Virus record (IMG/VR): IMGVR_UViG_3300036770_008729
Span: 186,001 to 250,000 of that record
DNA: 64,000 nt
Reading direction: 5' to 3' (one strand)
The first letter of the stretch is position 1. Each line of letters opens with the position of its first letter. This document shows positions 4,743-64,000 of this stretch, in pieces. The position numbers and the translations under genes are program-made. Under the pieces are notes generated by a model. It was given only the letters and a program-made list of their open reading frames with translations, made no database searches and was not told the DNA's origin.

Positions 4743-7700
4743 ATGGCAATTCCAGCAGGTTTTCCACTTTACCCTAACGGTGTGTGGAATGTTTCTTTTA
4801 GTTTTCCTGGTGTTCCACCACTCGATAAATTAAGTGATATATCTAAATCCATAGATGGTAAATCACCATCTTTACTTTTAATTCCAAATGTAGAATTTAT
4901 TCAGAAGGTAATTGAAGGTGATATTGGAATTGGTGACTCCATTTTGAAATCAGCATTTACAAAAAATTTCACATCACCATTGACTACTGGAAACGAATTT
5001 GTTTTCAAAAAGTTAGCTGAATTGACAAAGATTGATGTATCGAATATAGAAAAATATACAAAACCACCACAAGCACCTGTCAATACAAGTGCGGCAACCG
5101 GAGCAGCAGGTGCAGCAACTGGAGCAGCAGGTGCGGCAACTGGAGCAGTCAATAATCTTAAATCAAAGTCAAAATTTATTTTACCAGCCAGTGAAGTTAA
5201 GGTGAGTAGTGAATTTGACTTGAATGGTATTAAAGGTTTCGAAAAAGCATTGCTAAAATCTATTTTTGAGACTCAAAAACCTTATATGGAAATAGCAAAA
5301 CTTGTAGTTGCTAATATCTCCAAGGCTGAAGATATAGTTGCGAGAATATTGCCTTTGGCTTTGCCTATCGGAACACCTCTGAACACAAAATCAGCAAAAC
5401 CAATAGGTAATGCGGGTGATGCAACAAGACCAAAGGCGTTAGGATTTGGAGGCGGAGTGGAAATAAAGAAAGCGATTGCAAAATTAGACGCATTAAATAA
5501 AAAAGGTGGTGAAACAATAGTTACTCCAGATGGAAAAGCTATCAGGCAAACCAATTCAGCTTTAGGAAATGCTCCACTTACGGCATCACAATCAGCTGAG
5601 CAAACTAACTTTTCAAATAACAACTCACCACAAAGTGACATTCCACCAGATGGATATTCCTATAGTGTTATTTCAGCAATTTACTCGACAGGAACATTTG
5701 ATCCTAATATAAATTACGAATATACTTATATAGATGTTCCAGCTGACGAGGATATTGGTGAAAATGACCAAGGTCTTAACCTTAATGATGATGGTGATCC
5801 TTATAAAGGTTTTAAGCCAGATTGTATTATATTGGGTATTTTCGATAGTAAAGGAAATCCTCTCAATCCACTTGCTCAACTTGATGGATATGATAATAAT
5901 GGTCAAAAAGTTCAAGCTAGAAATAGTCAAGGTGCTTTACTTACAAAAGCTGGTTGGATTTTGGATTCACCAAAGTGGAAGTTTCCTAGCGGTGTTTATC
6001 AATGGCCTAGATATGGCACACCAACCTACAGATATAAAGGAACTGGAACAAATTTAGGACAGGTTATAAGTTCTAAAGAAAAACCAGCACCAAATATTGT
6101 TCTAGACTCTATAGTTGGTGATTGGGAAATAATGAAATATGATACTATTTATCCAGACGCTATACCCATAAAGAAAAATTTACTGAATAATGAAGATGCT
6201 ATAAAAGGAGATCCCGTAATAGAAAATTTTGATCCACCGGAAGTAACAGAGTATCAAAATTTTTTTAACGATTTAATTGAGTTTAGATTGGCAACCACTG
6301 ATGGTATTACACCCGAAGATAAAGCCGAAGCAAGAGCATCAGTATACCCACAGATAAATGTTCCGGCTCATTTAGAAAATGTTTTTTTATATGGTCAATC
6401 AAAATCATCTATTTACACCCCAATAAATGTTCCTGATTTACCTGAAAAAGATAATCCATATCCAGATACTCTTAGATATTCAATGAAACCTTATAAAATA
6501 TATTCAGCGCCAGCAGCCGCAGATTCGAGATTGAGAGGTGTCTTTGGTTCAAGAATGGATGATAGAAACGGTAACGTCTGGGTGGATCCAGAGGCTGATT
6601 ATCAGGCAAAAATTATCAGAGTTGATCCTACTACAAAAATAAAATATACGAAACCAGGTCAGAGTGAACCAATAGTTGCGGAGATTCAAGCATTTGTTAA
6701 AAATAATTTAATACTTAAAATTTCAGATGATAGACAATTTAATATAGAAGTATATAAATCAACAGATTCATCGGTTACGAATCCTCAGTATAACTTATAC
6801 AAGCAATTAACCGGACTTACTGCCTATAATTTAGAGAATTGGAACTACAATGATAATGATGGGATTCTAAATGATAGAATAGGATTCTCTCAAAGTTCTG
6901 ATGGTGGTGTAGGGTTTGGAAATAATGCACCAGTAAAGAACGACAAGAATGGGTATAGAATAACAATGTGGGGTGAAAGAAATACACCATATTACGATAC
7001 GGTAAATGGATATTTAGCATATAAAGAAGATGCTAATAAGTATGTAGAAATAGAAAAACAACCTGATGGATCTTGGACTTTTCAGAAATTCAGTTTTGAT
7101 GTTGTTGCTGAAGGTGTAGCAATAGAGATATTAAGACCAACACTAGAATCTACTGGACCACAAATAGATTTTTTATATCAGAGTTATAAATCAAATCCTA
7201 ATTACGGATATCCGGTTAATGGATTGACTAAGACATCACAATATAATACCTTTACCTCAGATCCTGGTCCTTTTCCACTGAGTGGTTCAAATTCAGTAAC
7301 CCAGACCTATATTATTAAAGATTCTGTTACAGCAAGTAATACAATAACATTTGAGAACGACTTAAGAAATGAATTAAAATATGCAAATAGTATTATATTT
7401 AGAAGAATCATAGTAGATCAAGCTTACACTTATGCTTCGAAAGACATAGAGCTTACAGTTGATAATACAAAAGTAGATGCTATAGTATATAATCCAGCTA
7501 AAAATGAGACAGTAGTTAAGTTTACAACTATTTTCAAAAGTATTTCAGGTGTGAACCTAAGACCTATAGAAAAAAGACACTGGATTCACCAAATTAAATA
7601 TAATGTGTTAGTTGCAGATTTATTTAGTAGAAAAATAAGAATACCAGTATCTGGTTTATATAAACTAACCGAAGATAAATCAATAGTTGAAATTCAAAAT

Positions 7701-30106: not shown

Positions 30107-31576
30107 TTATTTTATTATTGATACTTTATCTATTGTTAAATCCCCAGTATGTTTACCGTTATCTTTGTAAATGGTAATGTTATATTCAGCAGACGCTGGA
30201 ACCTCATACTCAAAAGTAAACTCTGGTCTTCCATTTTTATTTAACTTCCTACAACATCCCTTCTCACAAGACTTACCAGACATTTTATGGTCTGCTCCAA
30301 AGAAGTTCATAAATCCAGCGAATGTGGAATTTGTAGGGTTACAAACACCATTCTCGTTTACATAAACCTCATAAACACCTTTTGGAACTTTTGTAAAACT
30401 AACAACAACTTCTAACTTTACCTTTTTGGTTGAAGTTAGGTTGATTTGAGTTAAGCCAAGAACTTTGATACCGGTGGTTATCTTACCACTTACTTTAGTT
30501 CCAGGTGTTGATTGTGCAAATAACTTCGGTTCTACCTCATCCATCAATCTAACTTCTTTTATTTTAACAGGAGTGTCATCAAAATCATAATCCATAGTGT
30601 AGATAATATCCAATGCCTCTTCTAAAGAATAAACTACTTTCTCACCATTCTCATTGAAGAAAACATAAGGCCACTCTACTTCTTCTAACTGTTCTATTGT
30701 AACAGGTTGACCATTATTAGAATTGTGCCATTGTTGCCAAATACGGTCTATATTAGAATGATGTGTCCAAAAGATAGGATCGAAAGCAGCAGTTGGAACC
30801 CAACCCATAAGTCCAGTATTTGTGGTAGTTCCAGTAATTGAATTATTAAACTGTAAAGTTCCTGTTGTATCATTACCAGCACCAATGTAATCATGCATTG
30901 CACCGTGAGGAGCATTATTTATGTTAAGACAAAACATTTTATAATCAGTATAACTCATTATTTTTGTTAAGTCTAAAGATCTACTAATTTCACCAGATAC
31001 CGGCCATCCATCATTCAAACTATCATATCTAGCTTCTTCAAAAAGTGAAGAGTGTTTATCTCTAAATAAATCTGGAATACATCTATCTCTATCATTATTA
31101 TTTGTATAAGCCCAATAAGGAAGTGCAAAATCATTATATCCTGATAATTTTCTAACTATTTTTTCAAAGTGCCAGATATAAAGACGGTGCCAAACTAAAA
31201 AGTGTAATTTTTCTTTACCTGATGGAGTGTGAGTACAATTATCCCAACCATCCATTTTATCACCTACATTGTGATAAGCACCACACCATCGATTGTTTTT
31301 AATTGTATCAGGAACCCAGTGAATGGCACCTTGATAATACCAACTCAGGGGATCTTTACAATCTTTTTTTCTCATAATATCTAAAGCTTTGTTTAAGGCT
31401 AAAAGGTCGTTAATGGCTTCAGGTGAATTTGCATTTTTTCTTGTAAATCTTTGTTGTTCTGTTTGTTTCTCGTTATTACTACAAGAAAAAAGAAACATAC
31501 TAAAAACGATTAAGAAAAAGATAATAAGACCAATAAATAACTTTTTAAGGTCTTTGTAAGTAGTGAATCGATTCAT
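30107..31576 (-). CDS. Tyrosinase / polyphenol oxidase (type-3 copper), predicted lipoprotein
   Basis: IHW, CTH, FLVWHR, PHGAMH, DPIFWTHHSNIDRIW; LFSC lipobox-like. Confidence 0.9.
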   Translation of the reverse strand: MNRFTTYKDLKKLFIGLIIFFLIVFSMFLFSCSNNEKQTEQQRFTRKNANSPEAINDLLALNKALDIMRKKDCKDPLSWYYQGAIHWVPDTIKNNRWCGAYHNVGDKMDGWDNCTHTPSGKEKLHFLVWHRLYIWHFEKIVRKLSGYNDFALPYWAYTNNNDRDRCIPDLFRDKHSSLFEEARYDSLNDGWPVSGEISRSLDLTKIMSYTDYKMFCLNINNAPHGAMHDYIGAGNDTTGTLQFNNSITGTTTNTGLMGWVPTAAFDPIFWTHHSNIDRIWQQWHNSNNGQPVTIEQLEEVEWPYVFFNENGEKVVYSLEEALDIIYTMDYDFDDTPVKIKEVRLMDEVEPKLFAQSTPGTKVSGKITTGIKVLGLTQINLTSTKKVKLEVVVSFTKVPKGVYEVYVNENGVCNPTNSTFAGFMNFFGADHKMSGKSCEKGCCRKLNKNGRPEFTFEYEVPASAEYNITIYKDNGKHTGDLTIDKVSIIK

Positions 31577-52922: not shown

Positions 52923-53558
52923 TTATATACTGAACTTTCTTACTGCACGTACAGATTGACTATTAGACTTACCAGTGACATTGGCTAACCCAGTTAGAAA
53001 GTTAAAATTACAAGCGTTAACGCTGAAGTTTTCCGTACTACTCCAATATGCACTCAAAGATAATTGAGTACCACCAACAATCTCTAATCCTTGTGCCACT
53101 TCTAACATATTACAATATAGCTTATTAAGCTCATGTATAGCAGGAAGATACCAATCATTTTTCCCACCATTAGTTGATGAATCACACAAAAAAGCAGCAC
53201 CTGAAGTAGCTCCTGACTGTGTAATAATAAATTGTGTATTTACATCACCACTCCACAAACTATTACCCGATGTTTCACTGTTGGTAATATTACTCCAAGC
53301 ACTTGATGCTAAATTTTGCAAATCCACTACAAGATAAGATTGTGTACTACCTGTTAAATACCTATGAAATATAACCCCACCCTGATCACTAACATATTCA
53401 CCAACCTCATAAGTGAATTCTGATGACCCACCAGCATTACTTATTGTCGCTCCACTCTGAATCGATAAATTTCCACCACTTATTCCTAAATATTTATAAC
53501 CAGTTGGAGCTATTCCACCAGTTAGACCATTTTCTGATAAAACTATTCTTTTTGCCAT
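52923..53558 (-). CDS. DUF1566 (Lcl-type C-lectin-like) domain protein with shared fibre N-module
   Basis: DWYLPAIHEL, YWSSTE, VRAVRKF; MAKRIVL..APTGY. Confidence 0.8.
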   Translation of the reverse strand: MAKRIVLSENGLTGGIAPTGYKYLGISGGNLSIQSGATISNAGGSSEFTYEVGEYVSDQGGVIFHRYLTGSTQSYLVVDLQNLASSAWSNITNSETSGNSLWSGDVNTQFIITQSGATSGAAFLCDSSTNGGKNDWYLPAIHELNKLYCNMLEVAQGLEIVGGTQLSLSAYWSSTENFSVNACNFNFLTGLANVTGKSNSQSVRAVRKFSI

Positions 53559-56157: not shown

Positions 56158-56275
56158 ATATAGGTATTTTATTTAAGAAATACTCACTTCGTGAGAGTGT
56201 CTTTAGACACTACAAAAATCCGCTACGTTTTTTTGTATTAATAGGCACAAAAAAAGGAGAAAGTTTAATTTCTCC
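56158..56275. repeat. Composite repeat R4 with about 30 bp double-hairpin insertion
   Basis: R2-like with ctcac-ttc-gtgag and agtgtc-ttta-gacact inserted. Confidence 0.8.
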
Positions 56276-57606: not shown

Positions 57607-57697
57607 GCTATTATATTTCCTTTTTTATTTATAGTATATATTATAAATTGAGGAGATATTTTTAATAATCAGTTCAACGGTGTATTGGACTCTTTTG

Positions 57698-57810
57698 TAG
57701 TCAGGACAGGAATCGAACCTGCATGTGGGCCTTGTGTGTATTTCAACTATACTGCGGGTTTATCCACTCCGTTTAACTATTCGGTGCGTTTACCATTTCG
57801 CTACCTGACT
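57698..57810 (-). ncRNA. tRNA-scaffold RNA A (113 nt)
   Basis: AGTCAGG/CCTGACT acceptor, GCG/CGC D-stem, GCAGG-TTCGATT-CCTGT T-arm, no canonical anticodon arm. Confidence 0.75.
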
Positions 57811-57812
57811 AT

Positions 57813-57893
57813 TTGAGGATGAGAAGCCCTCTGTGTTGGTAGTAACTCAACTATCTACATTTACTCATCTCCTTTCTCAAGGGAACAACACAA
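57813..57893 (-). ncRNA. Structured RNA, kissing-loop type, copy 1
   Basis: Conserved ends shared with 58888-58981. Confidence 0.55.
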
Positions 57894-57976
57894 AAAATTA
57901 GAGTTGTTTCGGGAGCTTCACCCGCCTTCGAATATACTTGTATCTCTCAGTTAAGAGTCAATACGAGCTTTTTACT

Positions 57977-58348
57977 TTACAACTCAAATAGTATATTATT
58001 TAATTTCATTTCTCTTATTTTTTCATTTAAGTAAGGTCTTTTAGAAAGCATTGACCATACTGGTCCATAATTGTTAATTAGTGGTTTTGTATGGATTGTG
58101 ATATCAGATATATTTAATGTGTAGTCCATTTTTACATAGCCATATCTTTTATCTGCTTTTGCAACACCGGTAGATTCTACTCTGATAAATTCATCAGATA
58201 TGTTAATAATGTTATATTCCCACATATCACCAGCTTCTTCATATCCAGAGTCGTTAGGTATAAACAACCTAAATTGGACTATTGGATCATAAACAAATCC
58301 TAGACTGGCAAATATATCAATCAGGTCTTTAAGTATTTTATTTTTCAT
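57977..58348 (-). CDS. Hypothetical protein with tag (IREMKLNNIL)
   Basis: ORF track. Confidence 0.7.
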   Translation of the reverse strand: MKNKILKDLIDIFASLGFVYDPIVQFRLFIPNDSGYEEAGDMWEYNIINISDEFIRVESTGVAKADKRYGYVKMDYTLNISDITIHTKPLINNYGPVWSMLSKRPYLNEKIREMKLNNILFEL

Positions 58349-58452
58349 AAATTATTAAAACCAATATAAGCAATTATTATTACTAGTATCATAAGGATTA
58401 AACATCCATTATCTTCTGCACCAATTGGGTCGTTATCTAAATTATCATTCAT
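58345..58452 (-). CDS. 35-aa single-TM peptide (MNDNLDNDPIGAEDNGCLILMILVIIIAYIGFNNL)
   Basis: Translated manually; ATGA overlap with next gene. Confidence 0.5.
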   Translation of the reverse strand: MNDNLDNDPIGAEDNGCLILMILVIIIAYIGFNNL

Positions 58453-58457
58453 AAATG

Positions 58458-58563
58458 TAGTCAGGACAGGACTCGAACCTATAATCTGAATAACCTATAT
58501 CATCTTGATTTATTACCAATGATATTTTGTATTCACGCTTTAACCCAATTTCGCCACCTGACT
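58458..58563 (-). ncRNA. tRNA-scaffold RNA B (106 nt)
   Basis: Same acceptor; ATAGG-TTCGAGT-CCTGT T-arm; elongated helix in place of anticodon arm. Confidence 0.75.
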
Positions 58564-58569
58564 AATTAA

Positions 58570-58709
58570 AATATGAAGGCATATCGGTCGTTCCCAAGTT
58601 TGAATGATTAACCCCTGCCATACTCTTTGACTCGCTAAAGTCATACCATTTGAGATGTTAATCCTTGTCTGATTGGACTATACGTAACTCATCCACTCAG
58701 CTTCATATT
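58570..58709 (-). ncRNA. Stem-closed RNA element (140 nt)
   Basis: Terminal IR aatatgaag/cttcatatt between scaffolds B and C. Confidence 0.45.
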
Positions 58710-58712
58710 GTG

Positions 58713-58883
58713 TAGTCAGGACAGGACTTGAACCTGTATGTTTAGTTTTTACACTTTCACTTTTGATCAGATACTTGTGAAGGATGTTAATCAGACTTCG
58801 GTGAGATCAAATCACCTACACATCTACTCTAAACTTAACCTACCCTTTAGGATTTTCACGTCTACTAATTCCGTCACCTGACT
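58713..58883 (-). ncRNA. tRNA-scaffold RNA C (171 nt)
   Basis: Same acceptor; covarying D-stem ACG/CGT; ACAGG-TTCAAGT-CCTGT; multibranch insert. Confidence 0.75.
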
Positions 58884-58887
58884 ATAT

Positions 58888-58981
58888 TTGAGGATGAGAA
58901 GTCCTCTGTGTTGTAGAAGATTACACATCTATTCTTCTCTTTGCATTTCAGTTTCATTCCTTTCTCAAGGGAACAACACAA
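58888..58981 (-). ncRNA. Structured RNA, kissing-loop type, copy 2
   Basis: TGTGTTG/CAACACA stem, CCTT-GAGA-AAGG, GAGGA-CTTCTCA-TCCTC. Confidence 0.55.
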
Positions 58982-58988
58982 TATTTTA

Positions 58989-59203
58989 TAAACAACTACC
59001 GCCTTCTAAGTTGGGTGTTTGTATAGGCCCAAACCCCTATACTCCATCCTTTACATAATTTTTCAATGTATCTATAAACACATTAACCTAAACCACCCAC
59101 ATCTTAGAAATGTGAGGTAACTCTTCCTACTCTGACATGATTAATAATGACCGTTGATAATCATTAATAGAGTCAATATTTAGTGTTAATCAGTAGTTGT
59201 TTA
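58989..59203 (-). ncRNA. Stem-closed RNA element (215 nt)
   Basis: 13-bp terminal stem with a G-U pair on the minus strand; internal hairpins. Confidence 0.5.
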
Positions 59204-59206
59204 ATA

Positions 59207-59218
59207 TTTCAAAGAACT
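59207..59218 (-). promoter_or_regulatory. boxA-like AGTTCTTTGAAA
   Basis: 3' of scaffold D; repeated 3' of element E. Confidence 0.45.
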
Positions 59219-59223
59219 ATTTG

Positions 59224-59345
59224 TAGTCAGGACAGGATTCGAACCTGTAAGGTAACATTCGGTTTCAAGACTCTCCTCTATACCGATCAGAGGATGTAGT
59301 TACCACTTTACTCGTCTAATGCGTCTACCATTCCGCCACCTGACT
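59224..59345 (-). ncRNA. tRNA-scaffold RNA D (122 nt)
   Basis: Same acceptor; GCG-GAATGGTAGA-CGC Leu/Ser-type D arm; ACAGG-TTCGAAT-CCTGT. Confidence 0.75.
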
Positions 59346-59350
59346 ATGAA

Positions 59351-59422
59351 ATACCGATGCCTTTACTTTCACGAGGACTTGCGTGTCTTCTTAACATTAC
59401 TGTCTTAGGACCCCATCGGTAT
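59351..59422 (-). ncRNA. Stem-closed RNA element (72 nt)
   Basis: IR ataccgatg/catcggtat. Confidence 0.45.
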
Positions 59423-59426
59423 ATTA

Positions 59427-59653
59427 TGAATCAATCAAGAGCACTTATCTTTATGTTCAGAAGGTCATTCTCTATTCCACAAATTAATTTTACAGATGGT
59501 AGTACTTTTACAAAAACTTTTGCGTGTTTTATGCTCGGACTTATACACGTTATCAGCCATTAAAAAAGCAGGCCTATCGTAAACACTTACTCAAAGGATG
59601 GACATCAAGGAGCCTAATCCCCAATGAATTGGGTTTAACCAGTGATTGATTCA
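59427..59653 (-). ncRNA. Stem-closed RNA element (227 nt)
   Basis: Perfect 11-bp IR tgaatcaatca/tgattgattca. Confidence 0.45.
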
Positions 59654-59674
59654 ATATATTCAAAGAACTATTTG

Positions 59675-59750
59675 TCGTTAGGGTAGGACTCGAACCTACA
59701 ATCTTTCGGGATTTTCACCCGAACGCTCTATCAAATTGAGCCACCTAACT
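59675..59750 (-). tRNA. tRNA-Phe-like element with damaged anticodon arm (pseudo-tRNA E)
   Basis: AGTTAGG acceptor (A1-G72 mismatch), GCTC/GAGC D-stem, TTCGGG-TGAAAAT-CCCGAA, GTAGG-TTCGAGT-CCTAC. Confidence 0.6.
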
Positions 59751-59788: not shown

Positions 59789-59808
59789 TTTATTCTGCTT
59801 TTAAACAA

Positions 59809-59835
59809 TACAAAAAAACGTAGCGGATTTTTGTA
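59809..59835. repeat. Inverted copy of the TACAAAAATCCGCTACGTTTTTTTGTA palindrome
   Basis: Reverse complement of copies at 54541, 54850 and 56211. Confidence 0.85.
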
Positions 59836-59839
59836 TTGT

Positions 59840-60640
59840 TTAAATTGGTAGATTTACTTTGGATAATATTTGGTTCGAAACATGAGTGTAAATTTCAGTA
59901 GTTTTTACATTTGAGTGACCTAATATTTTCTGAATTACTCTTAAATCAGTACCATTTTCCAATAGATTTGTTGCACAACTATGTCTCAATTGGTGAATGT
60001 GATATTTTTCACCCAAATATTTTTTAACAATTTGATTACAGCTACCAGAACTATATTGTAAACTATTTTGACCATTGAAAAGGTATTCTTTTGGTCTATA
60101 TTCTTTAAAATATTCTCTAAGTAATTCTAATATTTTCTGGGATAGGGGTAAGACTCTATCTTTTCTACCTTTAGCATTTTTAATATGAATAATCATTCTT
60201 TTGGAATCGATATCTTCAATTTTAAGGTTAATTACTTCCGATACTCTTAATCCGACTGAATAAGTTAAAGATAATATCGTTTTATGTTTAAGATTAGTAA
60301 TTTTAGATAATTGTTCTTTAATGTAATCACCATCAATAACCTGTGGTAACTTCTTCTCAGATTTGGGTCTTTTGAAACTAACCTTATCATATTTCTTATT
60401 AAGTCCGAATTTGTAGAGGAAACGGATTGCGTTAATAACCTGATTTTGTTGTGAAACAGAAGTAAAACTATAAGTATCTAAATATGATTGAAAATCATTA
60501 GATGTGAGTCTAGTTGGTGAAATTTTTATTGTAGCTAAAAATTGATTAATATAATGGAGATAGGATTTTATTGTCCTATCTGAGTAATTTAAATACTTCA
60601 ATTTTTGATTACAAATTTCGTAATAATCTGTTTTTTTCAT
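59840..60640 (-). CDS. Tyrosine recombinase (integron-integrase-like N-domain, XerD-like catalytic domain)
   Basis: GLRVSE, NAKGRKDR, HQLRHS, LGH, TEIYTHV; catalytic set intact. Confidence 0.92.
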   Translation of the reverse strand: MKKTDYYEICNQKLKYLNYSDRTIKSYLHYINQFLATIKISPTRLTSNDFQSYLDTYSFTSVSQQNQVINAIRFLYKFGLNKKYDKVSFKRPKSEKKLPQVIDGDYIKEQLSKITNLKHKTILSLTYSVGLRVSEVINLKIEDIDSKRMIIHIKNAKGRKDRVLPLSQKILELLREYFKEYRPKEYLFNGQNSLQYSSGSCNQIVKKYLGEKYHIHQLRHSCATNLLENGTDLRVIQKILGHSNVKTTEIYTHVSNQILSKVNLPI

Positions 60641-60692
60641 ATGTGAAATATATATGAAATAAGAAAAAAAGTTTAATTATAGATATAATCTA

Positions 60693-60699
60693 GTTAGTG
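60693..60699 (+). other. attI-like crossover core G|TTAGTG
   Basis: Complementary to CACTAAC of the first attC; no palindromic arm on the recombinase side. Confidence 0.65.
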
Positions 60700-60957
60700 T
60701 CAATATTGCCTATGCTTATTTACTACCTCTTTACCGCAGCTTTTACACGTCCACTTACCATACTGCTCGCCATTAACCCCAGTTCGGCTAACGCATTGGC
60801 AATACTTTTTGCTTCGCCCACTAACATCGTGTATGCGTAAGGCTGCTTCGTACCCTGCAATAAAATCTCGTACTTTTTGTTCGTACCATCCTGCATCGTC
60901 TATCTTATATCTGAAACTTTCAGCATATAATTCAGCTTGTTTTTTTATATCTTCCAT
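60700..60957 (-). CDS. Cassette 1 ORF, C-terminal Zn-ribbon-like
   Basis: CQC...WTCKSCG; starts inside its attC. Confidence 0.7.
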   Translation of the reverse strand: MEDIKKQAELYAESFRYKIDDAGWYEQKVRDFIAGYEAALRIHDVSGRSKKYCQCVSRTGVNGEQYGKWTCKSCGKEVVNKHRQY

Positions 60958-61012
60958 TCTAATTAAATTTATCGTTAATAAATCGCCCTACGCATACACG
61001 CAGCCGTTATAC
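60819..61012 (+). other. attC-like site 1 (194 bp)
   Basis: CACTAAC-at-16 bp arm...arm-cagcc-GTTATAC. Confidence 0.8.
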
Positions 61013-61282
61013 GCAATTATATAACACCCAATCGTGAATAAATTTTATTGAAGAATTAAAAGCATCAATCCAATCAGGATAACATCCACAATCTTCTTCT
61101 ACCCATTCACCATTTTGCTTCCAATAAACATATCCACGCCAACATATGCCAACATCTTCCAGCTTATATCCATCAGCAAGAACTTCAATAAAAATTCCTT
61201 TATCTGAATAACTGCGTATAACAGCAGGTATATTCAATTGCGGTTTCTGTGCTTCATTCAAGTTTTGTTCTTCTATGCTCAT
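61007..61282 (-). CDS. Cassette 2 ORF (start MSIEEQ)
   Basis: Subset of ORF-track 61007..61468; stop lies in the R box. Confidence 0.65.
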   Translation of the reverse strand: MSIEEQNLNEAQKPQLNIPAVIRSYSDKGIFIEVLADGYKLEDVGICWRGYVYWKQNGEWVEEDCGCYPDWIDAFNSSIKFIHDWVLYNCV

Positions 61283-61346
61283 TTGTTCTAAATTTAAGTT
61301 TTGTAATTTTAAGTCCGCAACTAAATATACCTGCAAAACGTTATGT
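61216..61346 (+). other. attC-like site 2 (131 bp)
   Basis: GTATAAC-a-20 bp arm...arm-aaaac-GTTATGT. Confidence 0.8.
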
Positions 61347-61415
61347 GTAAGTGTTCCGTTCATCTTACTAATCAACATTTTGGTTGAAAATTTTAAAAGA
61401 AAAATCCCACACACA

Positions 61416-62246
61416 TTAAATGATTTTAATATATTTTGGTGGTATATTATCATATGTGAAAAAACCACCCTTGAATCTCAAATCTTTATATAAAGATAAT
61501 CCTTTGAAGTTTTCTATTCTTAAATTAACATATTCACCACCTTTATCACCAACTAACTCTTGTTTTATTGAAGACATCCATTCTTCATTAGGCGATAAAT
61601 AAATTCTCTCAGGATAAAAACTTCTAGTATTTTTTGTTTTTGGTATTAAACCATATTTCATTATCTTATCTAAATTTTTGGAGTCGGTTGTGTGATAAAG
61701 ATATTCACCTTCAAAATTAACTTTGTCATCATAATTTGGTTCTATCATTATGGATATTCTATCACTAGATATTAAGGTTTTTTCTATATCATTTTTATCA
61801 GTTAGTTTTTCACCTGGTTTAAGATTTACGACAGATATAAAATATCCCATATTATCTATTAATGATATAAGACCAAGTGATAATTCCTTATTATTAAAAT
61901 CTGTAAATATTGATATATCACCATAATTAAATTCACTTATTTGTTTTTCTAAATCCGAGATAGTCTTGTCTATATCAACCCCTCCTTTAATTAGACTTTT
62001 TGTTAATGAATCATTTTTGTCTTTATAGCCTTTTAACATTCTATTCATCGTAAATTTATCGGTGATGATTTGATAATATGGTGAATTCACATCTTCGCCA
62101 AAATTAGATTTTTTATTTAGACCATTTCCAATAAAGAAATTATCTAATTTTTTTATAACAATATCAAGTTTATCTGATTTTAGTGTTTCGTTAAGTAAAT
62201 TAAATTTTCTAAAACTGTTTATATATTTTCTCATTTCCTTACTCAT
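61416..62246 (-). CDS. Cassette 3 ORF: CTS-type protein with C-terminal Tpt1/ART-like domain
   Basis: MRKYINSFRKFNLLNE; YLYHTT...I.KYGLIP...RIYLS. Confidence 0.7.
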   Translation of the reverse strand: MSKEMRKYINSFRKFNLLNETLKSDKLDIVIKKLDNFFIGNGLNKKSNFGEDVNSPYYQIITDKFTMNRMLKGYKDKNDSLTKSLIKGGVDIDKTISDLEKQISEFNYGDISIFTDFNNKELSLGLISLIDNMGYFISVVNLKPGEKLTDKNDIEKTLISSDRISIMIEPNYDDKVNFEGEYLYHTTDSKNLDKIMKYGLIPKTKNTRSFYPERIYLSPNEEWMSSIKQELVGDKGGEYVNLRIENFKGLSLYKDLRFKGGFFTYDNIPPKYIKII

Positions 62247-62359
62247 AGTATTTCTTTTATATATAAATATTGAGAATTAAAACTTCCACCCTTCTTTTTC
62301 TTTTAAAATTTTTGTTTAGTTCTCCGAATGAAATTTAGTAGTTAATAACCCACACCTAC

Positions 62360-62413
62360 ACATAACAAATGATAAACAACATTAAAACGATTGTTTATCA
62401 TTAGTCGTTAGAA
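62360..62413 (+). other. attC-like site 3 (54 bp)
   Basis: ACATAAC-aa-atgataaacaa...ttgtttatcat-tagtc-GTTAGAA. Confidence 0.85.
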
Positions 62414-62420
62414 GCAATGC

Positions 62421-62654
62421 CTAATCAAGCGTTACTTCACTTTTATAAAGTCCGATGTTAAATCGGTATGTTTCGTTCTTTGAGAATGATACAAAAATAC
62501 TTCCTCCGTATTGGTTTATATTTGTTGGTTCTCTGCCAAGCGATACATTTTTATAAGTTTCTGCTAAGTATTTTTGTACTTCCATAGGCACAGCTTCTAA
62601 CAGCAAGTTAGCGTTATTGCCTATTTCGTTGGTATTCGATGTTTCATTTTTCAT
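62421..62654 (-). CDS. Cassette 4 ORF
   Basis: Starts inside its attC. Confidence 0.7.
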   Translation of the reverse strand: MKNETSNTNEIGNNANLLLEAVPMEVQKYLAETYKNVSLGREPTNINQYGGSIFVSFSKNETYRFNIGLYKSEVTLD

Positions 62655-62729
62655 ATTAAAATTTGTTTAAAATTGATACTGTATTATTTCAAATGTCGGC
62701 AACAAACGCCAACTTGCGAATCGTTATAT
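62595..62729 (+). other. attC-like site 4 (135 bp)
   Basis: TTCTAAC-a-arm with one extrahelical base...-gaatc-GTTATAT. Confidence 0.8.
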
Positions 62730-63014
62730 GCAATTAAAAATGGGCAACGACCATCGTTTTGCATTTGGAAATTTCTTTTTATACATTGCTTTTACTCGAA
62801 GTTTTACGAGTTCTTTAATCTGCTCATCATTCATCCATTGGCTTGCTCTGTCATTCAGCCTTGTTTCTACAATTATGTCTGCTTCTTCGGATAGTAGGAA
62901 TGGGTGTCCGTGTTTGAACTCGTAAAACCATCTTTTCAACTGCCAATTTTTAACAGCATATAACAAAGTATTGCCAATAGTGGCAGTTTGTGAGTTGTTT
63001 GAAGTTTGTTGCAT
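62724..63014 (-). CDS. Cassette 5 ORF
   Basis: Starts inside its attC; stop lies in the R box. Confidence 0.7.
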   Translation of the reverse strand: MQQTSNNSQTATIGNTLLYAVKNWQLKRWFYEFKHGHPFLLSEEADIIVETRLNDRASQWMNDEQIKELVKLRVKAMYKKKFPNAKRWSLPIFNCI

Positions 63015-63087
63015 CTTATTTAGTTTATTGGTTAATCAAAATTTATCTCTTTTAATGCCACCATCGGCAATACTTGGCACGTTATAA
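62958..63087 (+). other. attC-like site 5 (130 bp)
   Basis: ATATAAC-a-20 bp arm...arm-ggcac-GTTATAA. Confidence 0.8.
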
Positions 63088-63097
63088 AACAGTTTAA

Positions 63098-63325
63098 TTA
63101 TAGTATTTTACCACACTTACTGCACACATAACATTGTCCTTTTTCAATAGCATTATGGTTACAAACCGATTTTATAACATCGGCTTGTTGCAATTTTTTT
63201 ACTAACTTATCCAGTTCACTATAAGCTAAGTGTTCCAGTTGAGTTTTGTCGTGTTCACCAAAGTAGTTTCTAATTAACTTTAGGTCTTTAATTTCCTGTT
63301 CTGTTATTTCAATTTCTATTTTCAT
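63098..63325 (-). CDS. Cassette 6 ORF, C-terminal Cys cluster
   Basis: VCNH..CYVCSKCG; starts inside its attC. Confidence 0.7.
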   Translation of the reverse strand: MKIEIEITEQEIKDLKLIRNYFGEHDKTQLEHLAYSELDKLVKKLQQADVIKSVCNHNAIEKGQCYVCSKCGKIL

Positions 63326-63383
63326 TATTATTTAGTGTTGCAAATCCGTAAAAAAACTGACAACAAGCCGCAAACAGTTATAA
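63172..63383 (+). other. attC-like site 6 (212 bp)
   Basis: TTATAAC-at-cggcttgttg...caacaagccg-caaaca-GTTATAA. Confidence 0.8.
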
Positions 63384-63665
63384 AACATTTAATGAATCGT
63401 CAGTAATATCATCCATCACTAAACAAGACTCATTATTAGTTTCGTGATAATTTAAAAATCCTTTTGGGTATTCAAATATTGTTGTTAATAATTTCATCCC
63501 TTCACCACAATGAGAACATTTTAATTCACCACGATATGTGTGTTCGTATTCAAAACTAATTGAGCGTTGTTCCTTATCTGTTCCTATGTGTTTCATTTCA
63601 ATAAAATGTTCTTCTCTACATTCTAAACATCTTACTCTAACCAAAGGATTTTTAAATTCTACCAT
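63378..63665 (-). CDS. Cassette 7 ORF, Zn-binding (CLEC...CSHC)
   Basis: ORF track; stop lies in the R box. Confidence 0.75.
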   Translation of the reverse strand: MVEFKNPLVRVRCLECREEHFIEMKHIGTDKEQRSISFEYEHTYRGELKCSHCGEGMKLLTTIFEYPKGFLNYHETNNESCLVMDDITDDSLNVL

Positions 63666-63676
63666 AAATAAACGTT

Positions 63677-63769
63677 TTATAACAAGGTATATATGAAATA
63701 CCCTATTAAGGTTTCTACTAATTTTTAAATTAATCGTTAGGGTACTTCATATATACCCAACCGTTATGT
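63677..63769 (+). other. attC-like site 7 (93 bp)
   Basis: TTATAAC-aa-19 bp arm...arm-caacc-GTTATGT. Confidence 0.85.
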
Positions 63770-63792
63770 ATAATAAATTAAAAAATATGAGT

Positions 63793-64000
63793 TTATTCAT
63801 TTTCCTTAATCCATTTATCAAAAAGCTTTTGTGGATTTTTATTATAAAGTCTCCATAATGTAAATCTCATCAAATCACTTTGGTTTAAACACTTCGGATG
63901 TTCCTTAACTATCAAATCAGCTTTCTGTTCATCAGTTAAACAATGTCTCCACCAAGCAAGTGCTTCTTCGGTTGCTGGTGTTTCTTTAGCTATGTGAGAT
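63793..64000 (-). CDS. Cassette 8 ORF, partial (...LAWWRHCL...KWIKENE)
   Basis: Translated manually; start lies beyond the window. Confidence 0.6.
   Translation of the reverse strand, partial: SHIAKETPATEEALAWWRHCLTDEQKADLIVKEHPKCLNQSDLMRFTLWRLYNKNPQKLFDKWIKENE

Follow-up and report, generated by a model that had tools for sequence, protein, structure and literature searches.

Background

Integrons capture and shuffle gene cassettes. In classical integrons, such as class 1 and the Vibrio chromosomal integrons, IntI acts on an attI site next to its gene and on attC sites that are conserved in structure rather than in sequence. These sites fold on the recombinase-sense (bottom) strand, with the crossover in the distal box (G↓TT/AA↓C type; ↓ marks the crossover or junction throughout), and the ends of small, mostly ORFan cassettes complete the site in the circle that is inserted at attI. 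The promoterless genes lie upstream of their attC, face away from attI and are expressed from Pc, the boxes follow RYYYAAC/GTTRRRY, and the bottom strand has two or three single extrahelical bases. The additional IntI-specific domain around patch III is described as defining or essential (10.1101/2022.02.06.479319; PMC8138268). In inverted-intI integrons of the Treponema denticola type, only intI is flipped and the cassette genes keep the classical relation to attC. In phages, integron fragments and attC clusters have been reported for about 21 genomes, some with methyltransferase cassettes; these were classical attC sites recognised by IntI1, mostly without an integrase (Qi et al., 2023; PMC9892861). 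IntegronFinder 2.0 reported only Salinibacter as a complete integron in Bacteroidetes. In addition, Xer recombinases, which are without the IntI domain, are reported to integrate CTX-phi by exchanging one strand at a folded single-stranded attP, a hairpin that mimics a dif core site with an unpaired central region (Val et al., 2005); there, host-encoded XerC and XerD integrate a whole genome at one site per phage, without cassette arrays or a phage-encoded enzyme.

Here, we analyzed a 64,000-nt stretch (the window) of a 281-kb jumbo phage (IMG/VR record IMGVR_UViG_3300036770_008729, positions 186,001 to 250,000), in which an integron-like array, run in our interpretation by a short Xer-like recombinase, has every cassette gene flipped relative to the polarity of its site. 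The same design recurs in about 150 other phage contigs and often carries probable anti-restriction genes, and we found no published description of it.

The Cassette Array of the Window

Positions 60693-64000 hold an attI-like site and seven hairpin sites (TAAC...GTTA), detected by scanning for TAAC, complementary arms and GTTA, beside the gene of a 266-aa tyrosine recombinase (Table 1). An earlier note, made from the sequence alone, had observed that the cassette genes share the recombinase strand, start in the loops of their own sites, often stop at the crossover box and encode recurrent peptides where they read through one arm and the box. This observation was confirmed, with two qualifications: sites C and G are intergenic, so that only 5 of 7 cassette genes start inside a site, and ORF 62421-62654 has a second in-frame ATG just outside site D. 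The peptides RIHDVSG, NIPAVIR, ANLLLEA, GNTLLYA and QQADVIK are encoded by the inner arm plus box, but they are read in two different frames, so the conservation is at the DNA level and not at the peptide level.

Table 1. Coordinates of the features in the window (L followed by a number denotes one of the related loci collected for comparison)
Position	Strand	Feature	Remarks
59800-59844		Palindromic terminator-like hairpin just after the recombinase stop	Inverted repeat with a copy at 56202-56239; likely end of the array-plus-recombinase transcription unit (function inferred)
59840-60640	-	Tyrosine recombinase, 266 aa	Xer-like/IntI-like, lacking the IntI-specific additional domain
60674-60705	-	attI-like double-stranded site	Minus strand: last 12 nt of cassette 1 as left arm (...ACTAA), C-TAGAT(T) as spacer, right arm ATATCTATAATT; arm register inferred; crossover box GTTA at 60693-60696 (+)
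60694-61006	-	Cassette 1, 313 bp	ORF 60700-60957, 85 aa, CxC...CxxC C-terminus; start in loop of site A
60822-61009	-	attC-like site A, 188 nt	Loop holds 45 codons of ORF 1
61007-61340	-	Cassette 2, 334 bp	ORF 61007-61282, 91 aa; start in loop of site B; stop is TAA of site A box (TTA of GTTA); own ends pair at 9 of 9
61219-61343	-	attC-like site B, 125 nt	126-nt class; is L001:9298-9422
61341-62407	-	Cassette 3, 1067 bp	ORF 61416-62246, 276 aa; weak Tpt1/KptA-like (ADP-ribosyltransferase fold) C-terminal half; own ends pair at 9 of 9
62363-62410	-	attC-like site C, 48 nt	Short conserved type GATAAACAATCGTTTTAATGTTGTTTATC; intergenic; same sequence in L012, L022 and L051
62408-62723	-	Cassette 4, 316 bp	ORF 62421-62654, 77 aa; start in loop of site D; own ends pair at 8 of 9
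62598-62726	-	attC-like site D, 129 nt	
62724-63081	-	Cassette 5, 358 bp	ORF 62724-63014, 96 aa; start in loop of site E; stop is TAA of site D box (TTA of GTTA); 83% identical as a whole to L034:8705-9073 at a different array position, homology ending at the TAAC boxes
62961-63084	-	attC-like site E, 124 nt	
63082-63377	-	Cassette 6, 296 bp	ORF 63098-63325, 75 aa; start in loop of site F
63175-63380	-	attC-like site F, 206 nt	Loop holds about 42 codons
63378-63763	-	Cassette 7, 386 bp	ORF 63378-63665, 95 aa, zinc-ribbon-like; stop is TAA of site F box (TTA of GTTA); own ends pair at 9 of 9
63680-63766	-	attC-like site G, 87 nt	88-nt class; inverted repeat; intergenic
63764-64000	-	Start of cassette 8	ORF stop at 63793, ORF runs off the window; its site, the last of the array, at about 64084-64161 by the L001 mapping (L001 ORF 6522-6848, site 6480-6557)

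The pattern is not due to chance. On the minus strand, six of the seven sites (A, B, D-G) score -24.6 to -34.8 kcal/mol and site C scores -17.5, whereas only two comparable hits occur elsewhere in the window on that strand (30242-30341, -22.4; 53372-53524, -18.5). Across 80 related phage loci, 270 sites lie in 445 kb upstream of the recombinase (0.61 per kb) and 6 in 596 kb downstream (0.010 per kb), and arrays reach 18 sites. A strict RYYYAAC/GTTRRRY scan found nothing, as the boxes are (A/C)TAAC-G and T-GTTA-(T/G), with the fifth base mostly T and not R, and a search of Rfam returned no family in the array. Megablast of 24 kb of the window against GenBank phages gave no match.

The recombinase matches Pfam Phage_integrase and Phage_int_SAM_4. 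It scores 196.7 against NCBIfam XerA_Arch (NF040815), below the equivalog cut-off of 220, which some Bacteroidota relatives just pass, and 163.7 against the integron integrase model TIGR02249 (cut-off 265), the latter in two stretches. Its closest PDB entry is archaeal XerA (4a8e, E = 6e-39). When aligned with VchIntIA (2a3v), the 35 query residues 179-213 span the 83 IntI residues 182-264, indicating that the IntI-specific domain is lacking; the recombinase is therefore not an IntI. The catalytic residues R132, K157, H216, R219, H242 and Y251 are invariant in 17 aligned family members.

Structure of the Hairpin Sites and of attI

The sites have a 5-bp TAACG/TGTTA helix, then a 3-4-nt bulge on the 5' side only (186 of 264 sites), and then about 20 bp; this bulge, next to the box, takes the place of the single extrahelical bases of classical attC. 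RNAalifold on 36 sites predicts 25 pairs, of which 18 have compensatory double changes, and the G·U pairs at positions 5 and 24 are kept in 35 and 33 of 36 sequences. The two arms of a site give a duplex of -18.2 kcal/mol, against -6.4 for arms taken from different sites, and arms of different sites are only 36% identical. The sense strand is the more stable in 253 of 264 sites under strand-symmetric detection. In addition, the left- and right-arm position matrices correlate at r = 0.81 in register and at 0.25 or less when shifted. Thus the sites form imperfect hairpins conserved in structure but not in sequence, with one strand folding better.

At attI, the sequence xTAAC↓TAT(T/C)ATATAT is conserved 53-60 nt upstream of the recombinase ATG across the family and is variable beyond TAAC; the register of its arms was inferred from a comparison of position weight matrices (r = 0.60).

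Cassette Boundaries, Mobility and Cargo

The crossover box was shown to be the one assumed in the earlier note, which had named a crossover at the other box, splitting the ORFs, as a result that would refute it; the ORFs are not split. The end of a cassette pairs with the flank of its own site at 7.5 of 9 positions, against 4.7 of 9 for the flank of the array neighbour and 4.6 of 9 for random pairings (p = 3e-70), and in the window the own ends beat the neighbour in all seven cassettes. Homology between arrays resolves the crossover only to the invariant TAAC. L028:6581-6893 and L051:2132-2444 are 100% identical in different arrays and are bounded by TAAC, and a cassette shared at 97% identity lies next to attI in L012 but internally in L022, with the junction at TAAC. 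Homology breaks occur at one box only in nearly all cases; however, one pair (L005/L051) shares the ORF body but has different sites, with homology starting at the other box, and exchange may not be limited to one box. Furthermore, the cultured Polaribacter phage isolates Freya_9 and Freya_10 are identical over 3793 nt and then differ by one 307-bp cassette at attI (...CCAAC↓...CTAAC↓ACCCC), next to a recombinase 40% identical to that of the window. The box of the Freya sites is CAAC, and they were found by a relaxed scan.

For the window phage itself, an independent freshwater metagenome contig covers 61339-62314 with 0 differences and starts at the box. Direct evidence of excision was not obtained from the assembled contigs of public runs, in which the two joints in the array (62401>63672 and 62415>63761) have short sides (21-26 nt) and are out of register with the boxes, and were not counted.

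In the phage arrays, ORFs cover 127.6 kb on the recombinase strand and 25.5 kb antisense, the start codon lies inside the site in 118 of 268 cases, and the stop is the box TAA in 35 of 199 cases. Differences between homologous cassettes fall 44/30/71 by codon position. The cargo is mostly ORFan, with 414 cassette ORFs falling into 394 clusters, but of the 20 largest cassette ORFs, 9 are DNA methyltransferases, one is Mom and one is an RNA ligase. In the window, Pfam, NCBIfam and PHROGs gave nothing significant for the six small ORFs, whereas the 276-aa protein of cassette 3 has weak NCBIfam and PHROG matches to RNA 2'-phosphotransferase (E about 2e-3) and an Atlas structure lead to PF01885 (TM 0.55).

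The interpretation in the earlier note was partly supported: the array is integron-like, the genes are inverted relative to the site polarity, the site doubles as coding sequence, and cassettes are compact (296-386 bp for six of seven). Its proposal that attC also serves as an expression signal found no support as regards a promoter in the loops, since the Bacteroidota -7 motif TAnnTTT is not enriched (13 of 96 versus 9.7 in shuffles) and sigma-70-like sites are not in excess (32 versus 26.4 +/- 4.6); only an A-rich translation-initiation region upstream of the ATG is seen. The position independence of cassettes remains an inference of the note. Treponema-type integrons, named there as the closest precedent, are not, although they share the co-orientation of recombinase and cassette genes.

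Comparison with Bacteroidota Chromosomal Arrays

Arrays with the same short recombinase were found in the chromosomes of Flavobacterium terrisoli, F. saccharophilum, F. cheonanense and several MAGs, and we found no publication on them. These recombinases are 262-266 aa in length, are 41-51% identical and lack the additional domain, and the sites are 126 nt with the same TAACG...TGTTA boxes, AGTTGCGG/CCGCAATTG inner helix and AATTG outer arm. However, the array lies downstream of the recombinase, the ORFs are on the other strand, the sites are intergenic after the stop codon, and the loops are neither A/T-rich nor coding. These chromosomal relatives (L110, L139, L156) thus show the layout in which only the recombinase gene is flipped, while in the phage the ORFs are flipped relative to the site, so the phage version is a mirror image. 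No cassette was shared between the phage arrays and the classical-type bacterial arrays examined, the only hits being to L083, L085 and L105, which look like phage-type contigs.

Discussion

We propose, with fairly high confidence, that this locus is a phage-borne, integron-like cassette platform. In this model, circular cassettes are inserted at attI and neighbouring hairpin sites recombine to excise cassettes. Each site would fold on the recombinase-sense strand into a helix of about 25 bp that imitates a simple dif/lox-type core site, with two 12-nt arms of the same consensus (aATTnCnnATAn) in dyad symmetry, a 6-bp spacer carrying the bulge, and strand exchange inside the invariant TAAC (TAA↓C by analogy). 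In the use of a Xer-type recombinase without the IntI domain on a hairpin that mimics a dif core site, the proposed reaction would resemble the integration of CTX-phi. As the two conserved G·T wobbles would be A·C mismatches on the other strand, only one strand would fold well; G·T enrichment on the coding strand would also favour hairpins in the mRNA, so part of the signal could reflect an RNA-level role. The outermost 9 bp of the helix would be made from the two ends of one cassette, and the full site would therefore exist only in the excised circle. Compared with classical integrons, there is no IntI-specific domain, the box is longer (12-nt arms), and the genes lie on the folding strand: the ORF starts in the loop behind the A-rich initiation region, reads through the inner arm and box, and ends at or just before the next crossover box, the whole array being read towards attI and the recombinase gene, so that a Pc promoter at attI cannot drive it. 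Compared with the attC clusters of Qi et al. (2023), a dedicated recombinase family with its own attI and site type recurs in many viral contigs.

Our analysis established the site architecture, strand bias, covariation, cassette boundaries, movement of cassettes between phages and the single-cassette difference between cultured isolates, whereas the exact cleavage position, single-strand exchange with replicative resolution, read-through transcription and the anti-defence role of the small ORFs are inferred. Recombination in the window phage is likewise not directly observed, and because the enzyme lacks the domain considered essential for attC recombination in IntI, hairpin recombination by it is unproven. 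The cargo is probably a fast-changing set of counter-defence genes.

Among the alternatives, all of which we consider unlikely, the one that survives best is a Xer/dif-type module system acting on double-stranded sites, like Acinetobacter pdif modules, in which TAAC and GTTA would be two separate duplex sites in inverted orientation. The similarity to XerA, the dif-like arms and the appearance of attI as a duplex core site are in favor of this view. However, the 20-bp inner helix varies in sequence between sites but stays complementary, which points to folding rather than to sequence-specific duplex binding, the conserved wobbles and one-sided bulge make sense only in a folded single strand, and homology breaks lie at one box only in nearly all cases. 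Moreover, pdif modules have sequence-conserved 28-bp duplex sites in alternating orientation and a host XerC/XerD pair, while here there is a single element-encoded recombinase, and the sites are arrays of hairpins, not the one dif site of XerA-type dimer resolution.

It is similarly unlikely that the hairpins work mainly at the RNA level (processing, stability or translational control between cistrons) beside an unrelated lysogeny integrase or dimer resolvase. The more stable strand is the mRNA-sense strand, with conserved G·U pairs, the start codon and A-rich leader sit in the loop, and the authors of the Freya and Ingeline phage genomes read the gene as a lysogeny integrase (PMC8776804). 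Nevertheless, RNA roles do not explain homology breaks exactly at TAAC, complementarity between the two ends of a cassette but not between neighbours, the conserved attI next to the recombinase ATG, or the single-cassette indel at attI in Freya, and the arms carry a dyad-symmetric 12-nt consensus typical of recombinase binding sites; an added RNA role is not excluded. Finally, an ordinary integron fragment or attC cluster picked up from a host, as suggested by the attC-like boxes and by the phages of Qi et al. (2023), is very unlikely, given the recombinase without the IntI domain and below the integron-integrase cut-off, the recurrence of the layout in 151 phage stretches with recombinase identity from 52 to 100%, the consistently reversed gene orientation, unlike that of the Bacteroidota chromosomal arrays, and the absence of cassettes shared with the classical-type bacterial arrays examined.

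A broader reading, which we regard as somewhat more likely than not, is that a distinct class of integron exists, run by a short Xer-like recombinase that needs no IntI domain because its folded site is a strand-specific mimic of a dif-type core site. It would be shared by Bacteroidota chromosomes, with classical gene orientation, and their phages, with mirror orientation and genes overlapping the site, where it would serve as a rapidly shuffling store of counter-defence genes and would be active in cultured Polaribacter phages; the Freya isolates, which differ by whole cassettes, make it testable at the bench.

Integrons are thought to need the IntI-specific domain to recombine folded attC sites and to express cassettes from a promoter at attI, and this system, in the proposed model, keeps the integron logic of attI, hairpin sites and circular cassettes but breaks both rules. 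It would place a cassette-capture machine inside virulent-type and jumbo phages, and would be a second route to integron-type recombination and a source of phage genome plasticity. It would also change how "integrase" genes, currently taken as a sign of lysogeny, are read in flavobacterial phages, and it points to hundreds of small ORFan cassettes as candidate anti-defence genes.

Organization of the cassette array

A gene for a 266-aa tyrosine recombinase lies at the 3' end of the window, and a run of minus-strand ORFs extends to its right (see the table below). A scan for TAAC, complementary arms and GTTA found seven sites (A to G), whereas on the minus strand only two comparable hits occur elsewhere in the other 61 kb. 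The observation made in the earlier note, that cassette genes start inside their own attC and often stop in the crossover box, is confirmed, and the positions it gave for the start and stop codons are correct. The recurrent peptides it pointed out are encoded by the inner arm and box, in two different reading frames. However, sites C (48 nt) and G (87 nt) are intergenic, so 5 of 7 genes start inside a site. The cassettes measure 313, 334, 1067, 316, 358, 296 and 386 bp. The window belongs to a 281-kb IMG/VR contig, on which the array has one more site just beyond the window end.

Features of the window and of two compared loci
Feature	Coordinates	Strand	Remarks
Tyrosine recombinase gene	59840-60640	minus	266 aa
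Seven hairpin sites (A to G)	between 60822 and 63766		TAAC, complementary arms, GTTA
ATG	60957		in the loop of site A
ATG	61282		in the loop of site B
ATG	62654		in the loop of site D
ATG	63014		in the loop of site E
ATG	63325		in the loop of site F
Stop codons	61007, 62724, 63378		TTA of the GTTA boxes
Site C	62363-62410		short type, nearly fixed sequence
Sigma-70 consensus across attI	60676-60703	minus	TTGACA, 16 nt, TATAAT
tRNA-like block	57682-59750	minus	five units with shared acceptor and T-arm ends
tRNA-Phe, anticodon AAA	59674-59750	minus	the only ARAGORN call
tRNA-like unit	57698-57810	minus	113 nt; Rfam tRNA model matches end to end
tRNA-like unit	58458-58563	minus	106 nt; Rfam tRNA model matches end to end
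tRNA-like unit	58697-58887	minus	longer still
tRNA-like unit	59208-59349	minus	longer still
38-nt inverted repeat	56202-56239 and 59807-59844		95% complementary; brackets the tRNA block
Metagenome contig of 1001 nt, match to window	61339-62314		no differences
Point where another contig leaves the window sequence	63084
Shared ORF body with different site types	L005:7839-8179 and L051:3467-3798		homology starts at the inner GTTA box

A family of phage arrays

The array is not a single case, as the recombinase has 151 relatives in IMG/VR at 52-100% identity. Across 80 loci retrieved for comparison (compared sequences are designated below by L numbers), hairpin sites occur at 0.61 per kb upstream of the recombinase and at 0.010 per kb downstream, and arrays reach 18 sites. 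Site lengths fall into tight classes of about 88 and about 126 nt, and there is also a short type of about 48-53 nt with a conserved sequence. The short type represented by site C, with a nearly fixed sequence (GATAAACAATCGTTTTAATGTTGTTTATC), recurs in many arrays (also in L012, L022, L051 and L006) and draws very high contig depth in unrelated metagenomes (138-188x, against about 5-16x for its neighbours), and it may be a widely shared “universal” site.

ORFs cover 127.6 kb on the recombinase strand and 25.5 kb on the other strand. The start codon lies inside the site in 118 of 268 cases and within 120 nt after it in 136 cases, while the stop is the box TAA in 35 of 199 cases and lies within 30 nt of the box in a further 96. 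Differences between homologous cassettes fall mainly on third codon positions (44/30/71).

Position of the crossover

The earlier note had named a crossover at the other box as an outcome that would refute its reading, and the finding withstood this test in three independent ways. First, the same cassette occurs in different arrays at different positions, with homology ending exactly at TAAC on both sides. L028 and L051 share one cassette at 100% identity over 313 nt, L012 (next to attI) and L022 (internal) share one at 97%, and window cassette 5 matches L034 at 83%. Although no homology end fell at the other box in the systematic count, one pair (L005/L051) does begin there, with the same ORF body joined to two different site types, which hints at occasional exchange at the second box or at site replacement.

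Second, the 9 nt before the next TAAC box, which form the end of a cassette, pair with the 9 nt after that cassette's own GTTA box at 7.5 of 9 positions, whereas the flank supplied by the array neighbour pairs at 4.7 of 9, the same as random combinations at 4.6 of 9. In the window, the own ends beat the neighbour flank in all seven cassettes. The site is thus complete only in a circular cassette, and the exchange point lies inside TAAC.

Third, the cultured Polaribacter phages Freya_9 and Freya_10 are identical over 3793 nt and then differ by one 307-bp cassette, inserted at ...CCAAC ↓ ...CTAAC ↓ ACCCC, immediately upstream of a recombinase 40% identical to that of the window. Freya_1 lacks a 4.95-kb block of 12 small ORFs at the same point, and the Freya cassette gene also starts inside its site. 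The ten isolates of this one cultured phage species (Freya_1 to Freya_10, MT732463-MT732472; L081 and L163-L168) form a ladder of genome sizes from 43,978 to 48,920 bp, and in the isolates that we compared directly (Freya_1, Freya_9 and Freya_10) the difference is whole cassettes inserted upstream of the recombinase. These isolates are a ready laboratory model.

In addition, independent metagenomes hold only subsets of the window's cassettes, with contigs that begin or end at the boxes. As these data are assembled contigs, they support mosaicism but not excision.

Structure of the sites

On the recombinase-sense strand, the site is predicted to fold into a 5-bp helix (TAACG/TGTTA), followed by a 3-4-nt bulge on the 5' side only (186 of 264 sites) and about 20 more base pairs. 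RNAalifold applied to 36 sites predicted 25 pairs, 18 of them with compensatory double changes, and two G·U pairs are kept in 35 and 33 of the 36 sequences; on the other strand these would be A·C mismatches. Under strand-symmetric detection, the sense strand is the more stable in 253 of 264 sites. The 12 nt ending in TAA (aATTnCnnATAA) and 12 nt on the opposite arm (aaTTnCnTATAn) share one consensus (r = 0.81 in register and 0.25 or less when shifted) and lie in dyad symmetry around a 6-bp spacer. The folded site therefore looks like a simple dif/lox-type core site for a homodimer. The attI site (xTAAC ↓ TATTATATAT...) lies 53-60 nt upstream of the recombinase ATG and appears to supply a duplex right arm of the same kind, although the attI arm register is inferred.

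The recombinase and its bacterial relatives

The protein has the Phage_integrase and Phage_int_SAM_4 domains and all six catalytic residues, but it falls below the curated cut-offs for both XerA and integron integrase. It lacks about 48 residues where IntI carries its specific domain, which is treated in the literature as defining and essential for integron recombination. By that criterion the protein is not an IntI, although the system is inferred to work like an integron.

Bacteroidota genomes, including those of Flavobacterium terrisoli, F. saccharophilum, F. cheonanense and several MAGs, encode 262-266-aa relatives without the extra domain, and these genes are followed downstream by arrays of 126-nt sites with the same boxes and inner-helix motifs. 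In those arrays the ORFs lie on the other strand and the sites are intergenic, after the stop codon, as in classical integrons. Relative to the attI/attC chassis, every gene is flipped in the phage version. Co-oriented intI, for which the earlier note cited Treponema as the closest precedent, describes the bacterial cousins and not the phage. Relatives of the recombinase with nearby hairpin sites also occur outside Bacteroidota, on a Firmicute chromosome with about 70-nt sites (Desulfitobacterium sp. Sab5, L129) and on archaeal and other MAG contigs (L083, L105 and L106), of which L083 has the phage-type layout and may be a phage contig binned into a MAG.

Expression and cargo

The 60 nt upstream of loop start codons are G-poor, and positions -14 to -10 are 70-80% A, which is typical of Bacteroidota translation starts that lack a Shine-Dalgarno sequence. 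The -7 promoter motif is not enriched, and sigma-70-like sites are not in excess. A perfect sigma-70 consensus straddles the attI crossover, with the -35 element coming from the end of cassette 1 and the -10 element from the attI right arm, 28 nt upstream of the recombinase ATG. Recombinase expression might therefore depend on which cassette is first, although this arrangement is seen only in one attI subtype (L001, which is the locus of the window, L014, L015 and L018).

The array is co-oriented with its flanking genes and with the recombinase, and a terminator-like hairpin follows the recombinase stop. We therefore favour read-through transcription towards attI, but this is inferred. With this orientation, the non-template strand of transcription is the strand that folds, which could help to expose the sites, but this is speculation. 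The terminator-like hairpin is one copy of the 38-nt inverted repeat that brackets the tRNA block, each copy being itself a palindrome with a T-run, like a bidirectional terminator. Within the block, the end-to-end Rfam matches imply insertions of 35-40 nt, and the units may be intron-bearing or disrupted phage tRNAs; the anticodon of the tRNA-Phe is unusual.

The 414 distinct cassette ORFs form 394 clusters, with a median length of 81 aa. Of the 20 largest, nine are DNA methyltransferases (C5, N4/N6 and Dam types), one is Mom and one is an RNA ligase, while the 276-aa protein of the window is weakly Tpt1/KptA-like. This fits a counter-defence repertoire, although for the small ORFs such a role would be conjecture.

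Relation to published work and interpretation

Qi et al. (2023) described classical integron pieces and attC clusters in 21 phages, but not this system, and IntegronFinder 2.0 reports only Salinibacter as a complete integron in Bacteroidetes. Smyshlyaev et al. (2021) noted that the IntI insertion is not fully conserved in their integron-like recombinase subgroup, but assigned no function to members lacking it. The paper describing Freya and Ingeline reads the gene as a lysogeny integrase and as a sign of lysogeny. Full-text literature searches found no description of the present arrangement, although an unindexed paper cannot be excluded.

Taken together, the interpretation offered in the earlier note is partly supported: it is right on structure and on the crossover box, it remains unproven on promoters in the loops and on the position independence of cassettes, and it is off on the closest precedent. 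The gene layout, the covariation and strand bias of the sites, the cassette boundaries and the single-cassette difference between cultured isolates come directly from the sequence comparisons, whereas the attI arm register, read-through transcription and integron-like recombination by this enzyme are inferences. The feature follows the integron principle in a new form, with a different enzyme solution and a mirror-image gene layout, and it is widespread in phages of Bacteroidota-type hosts.
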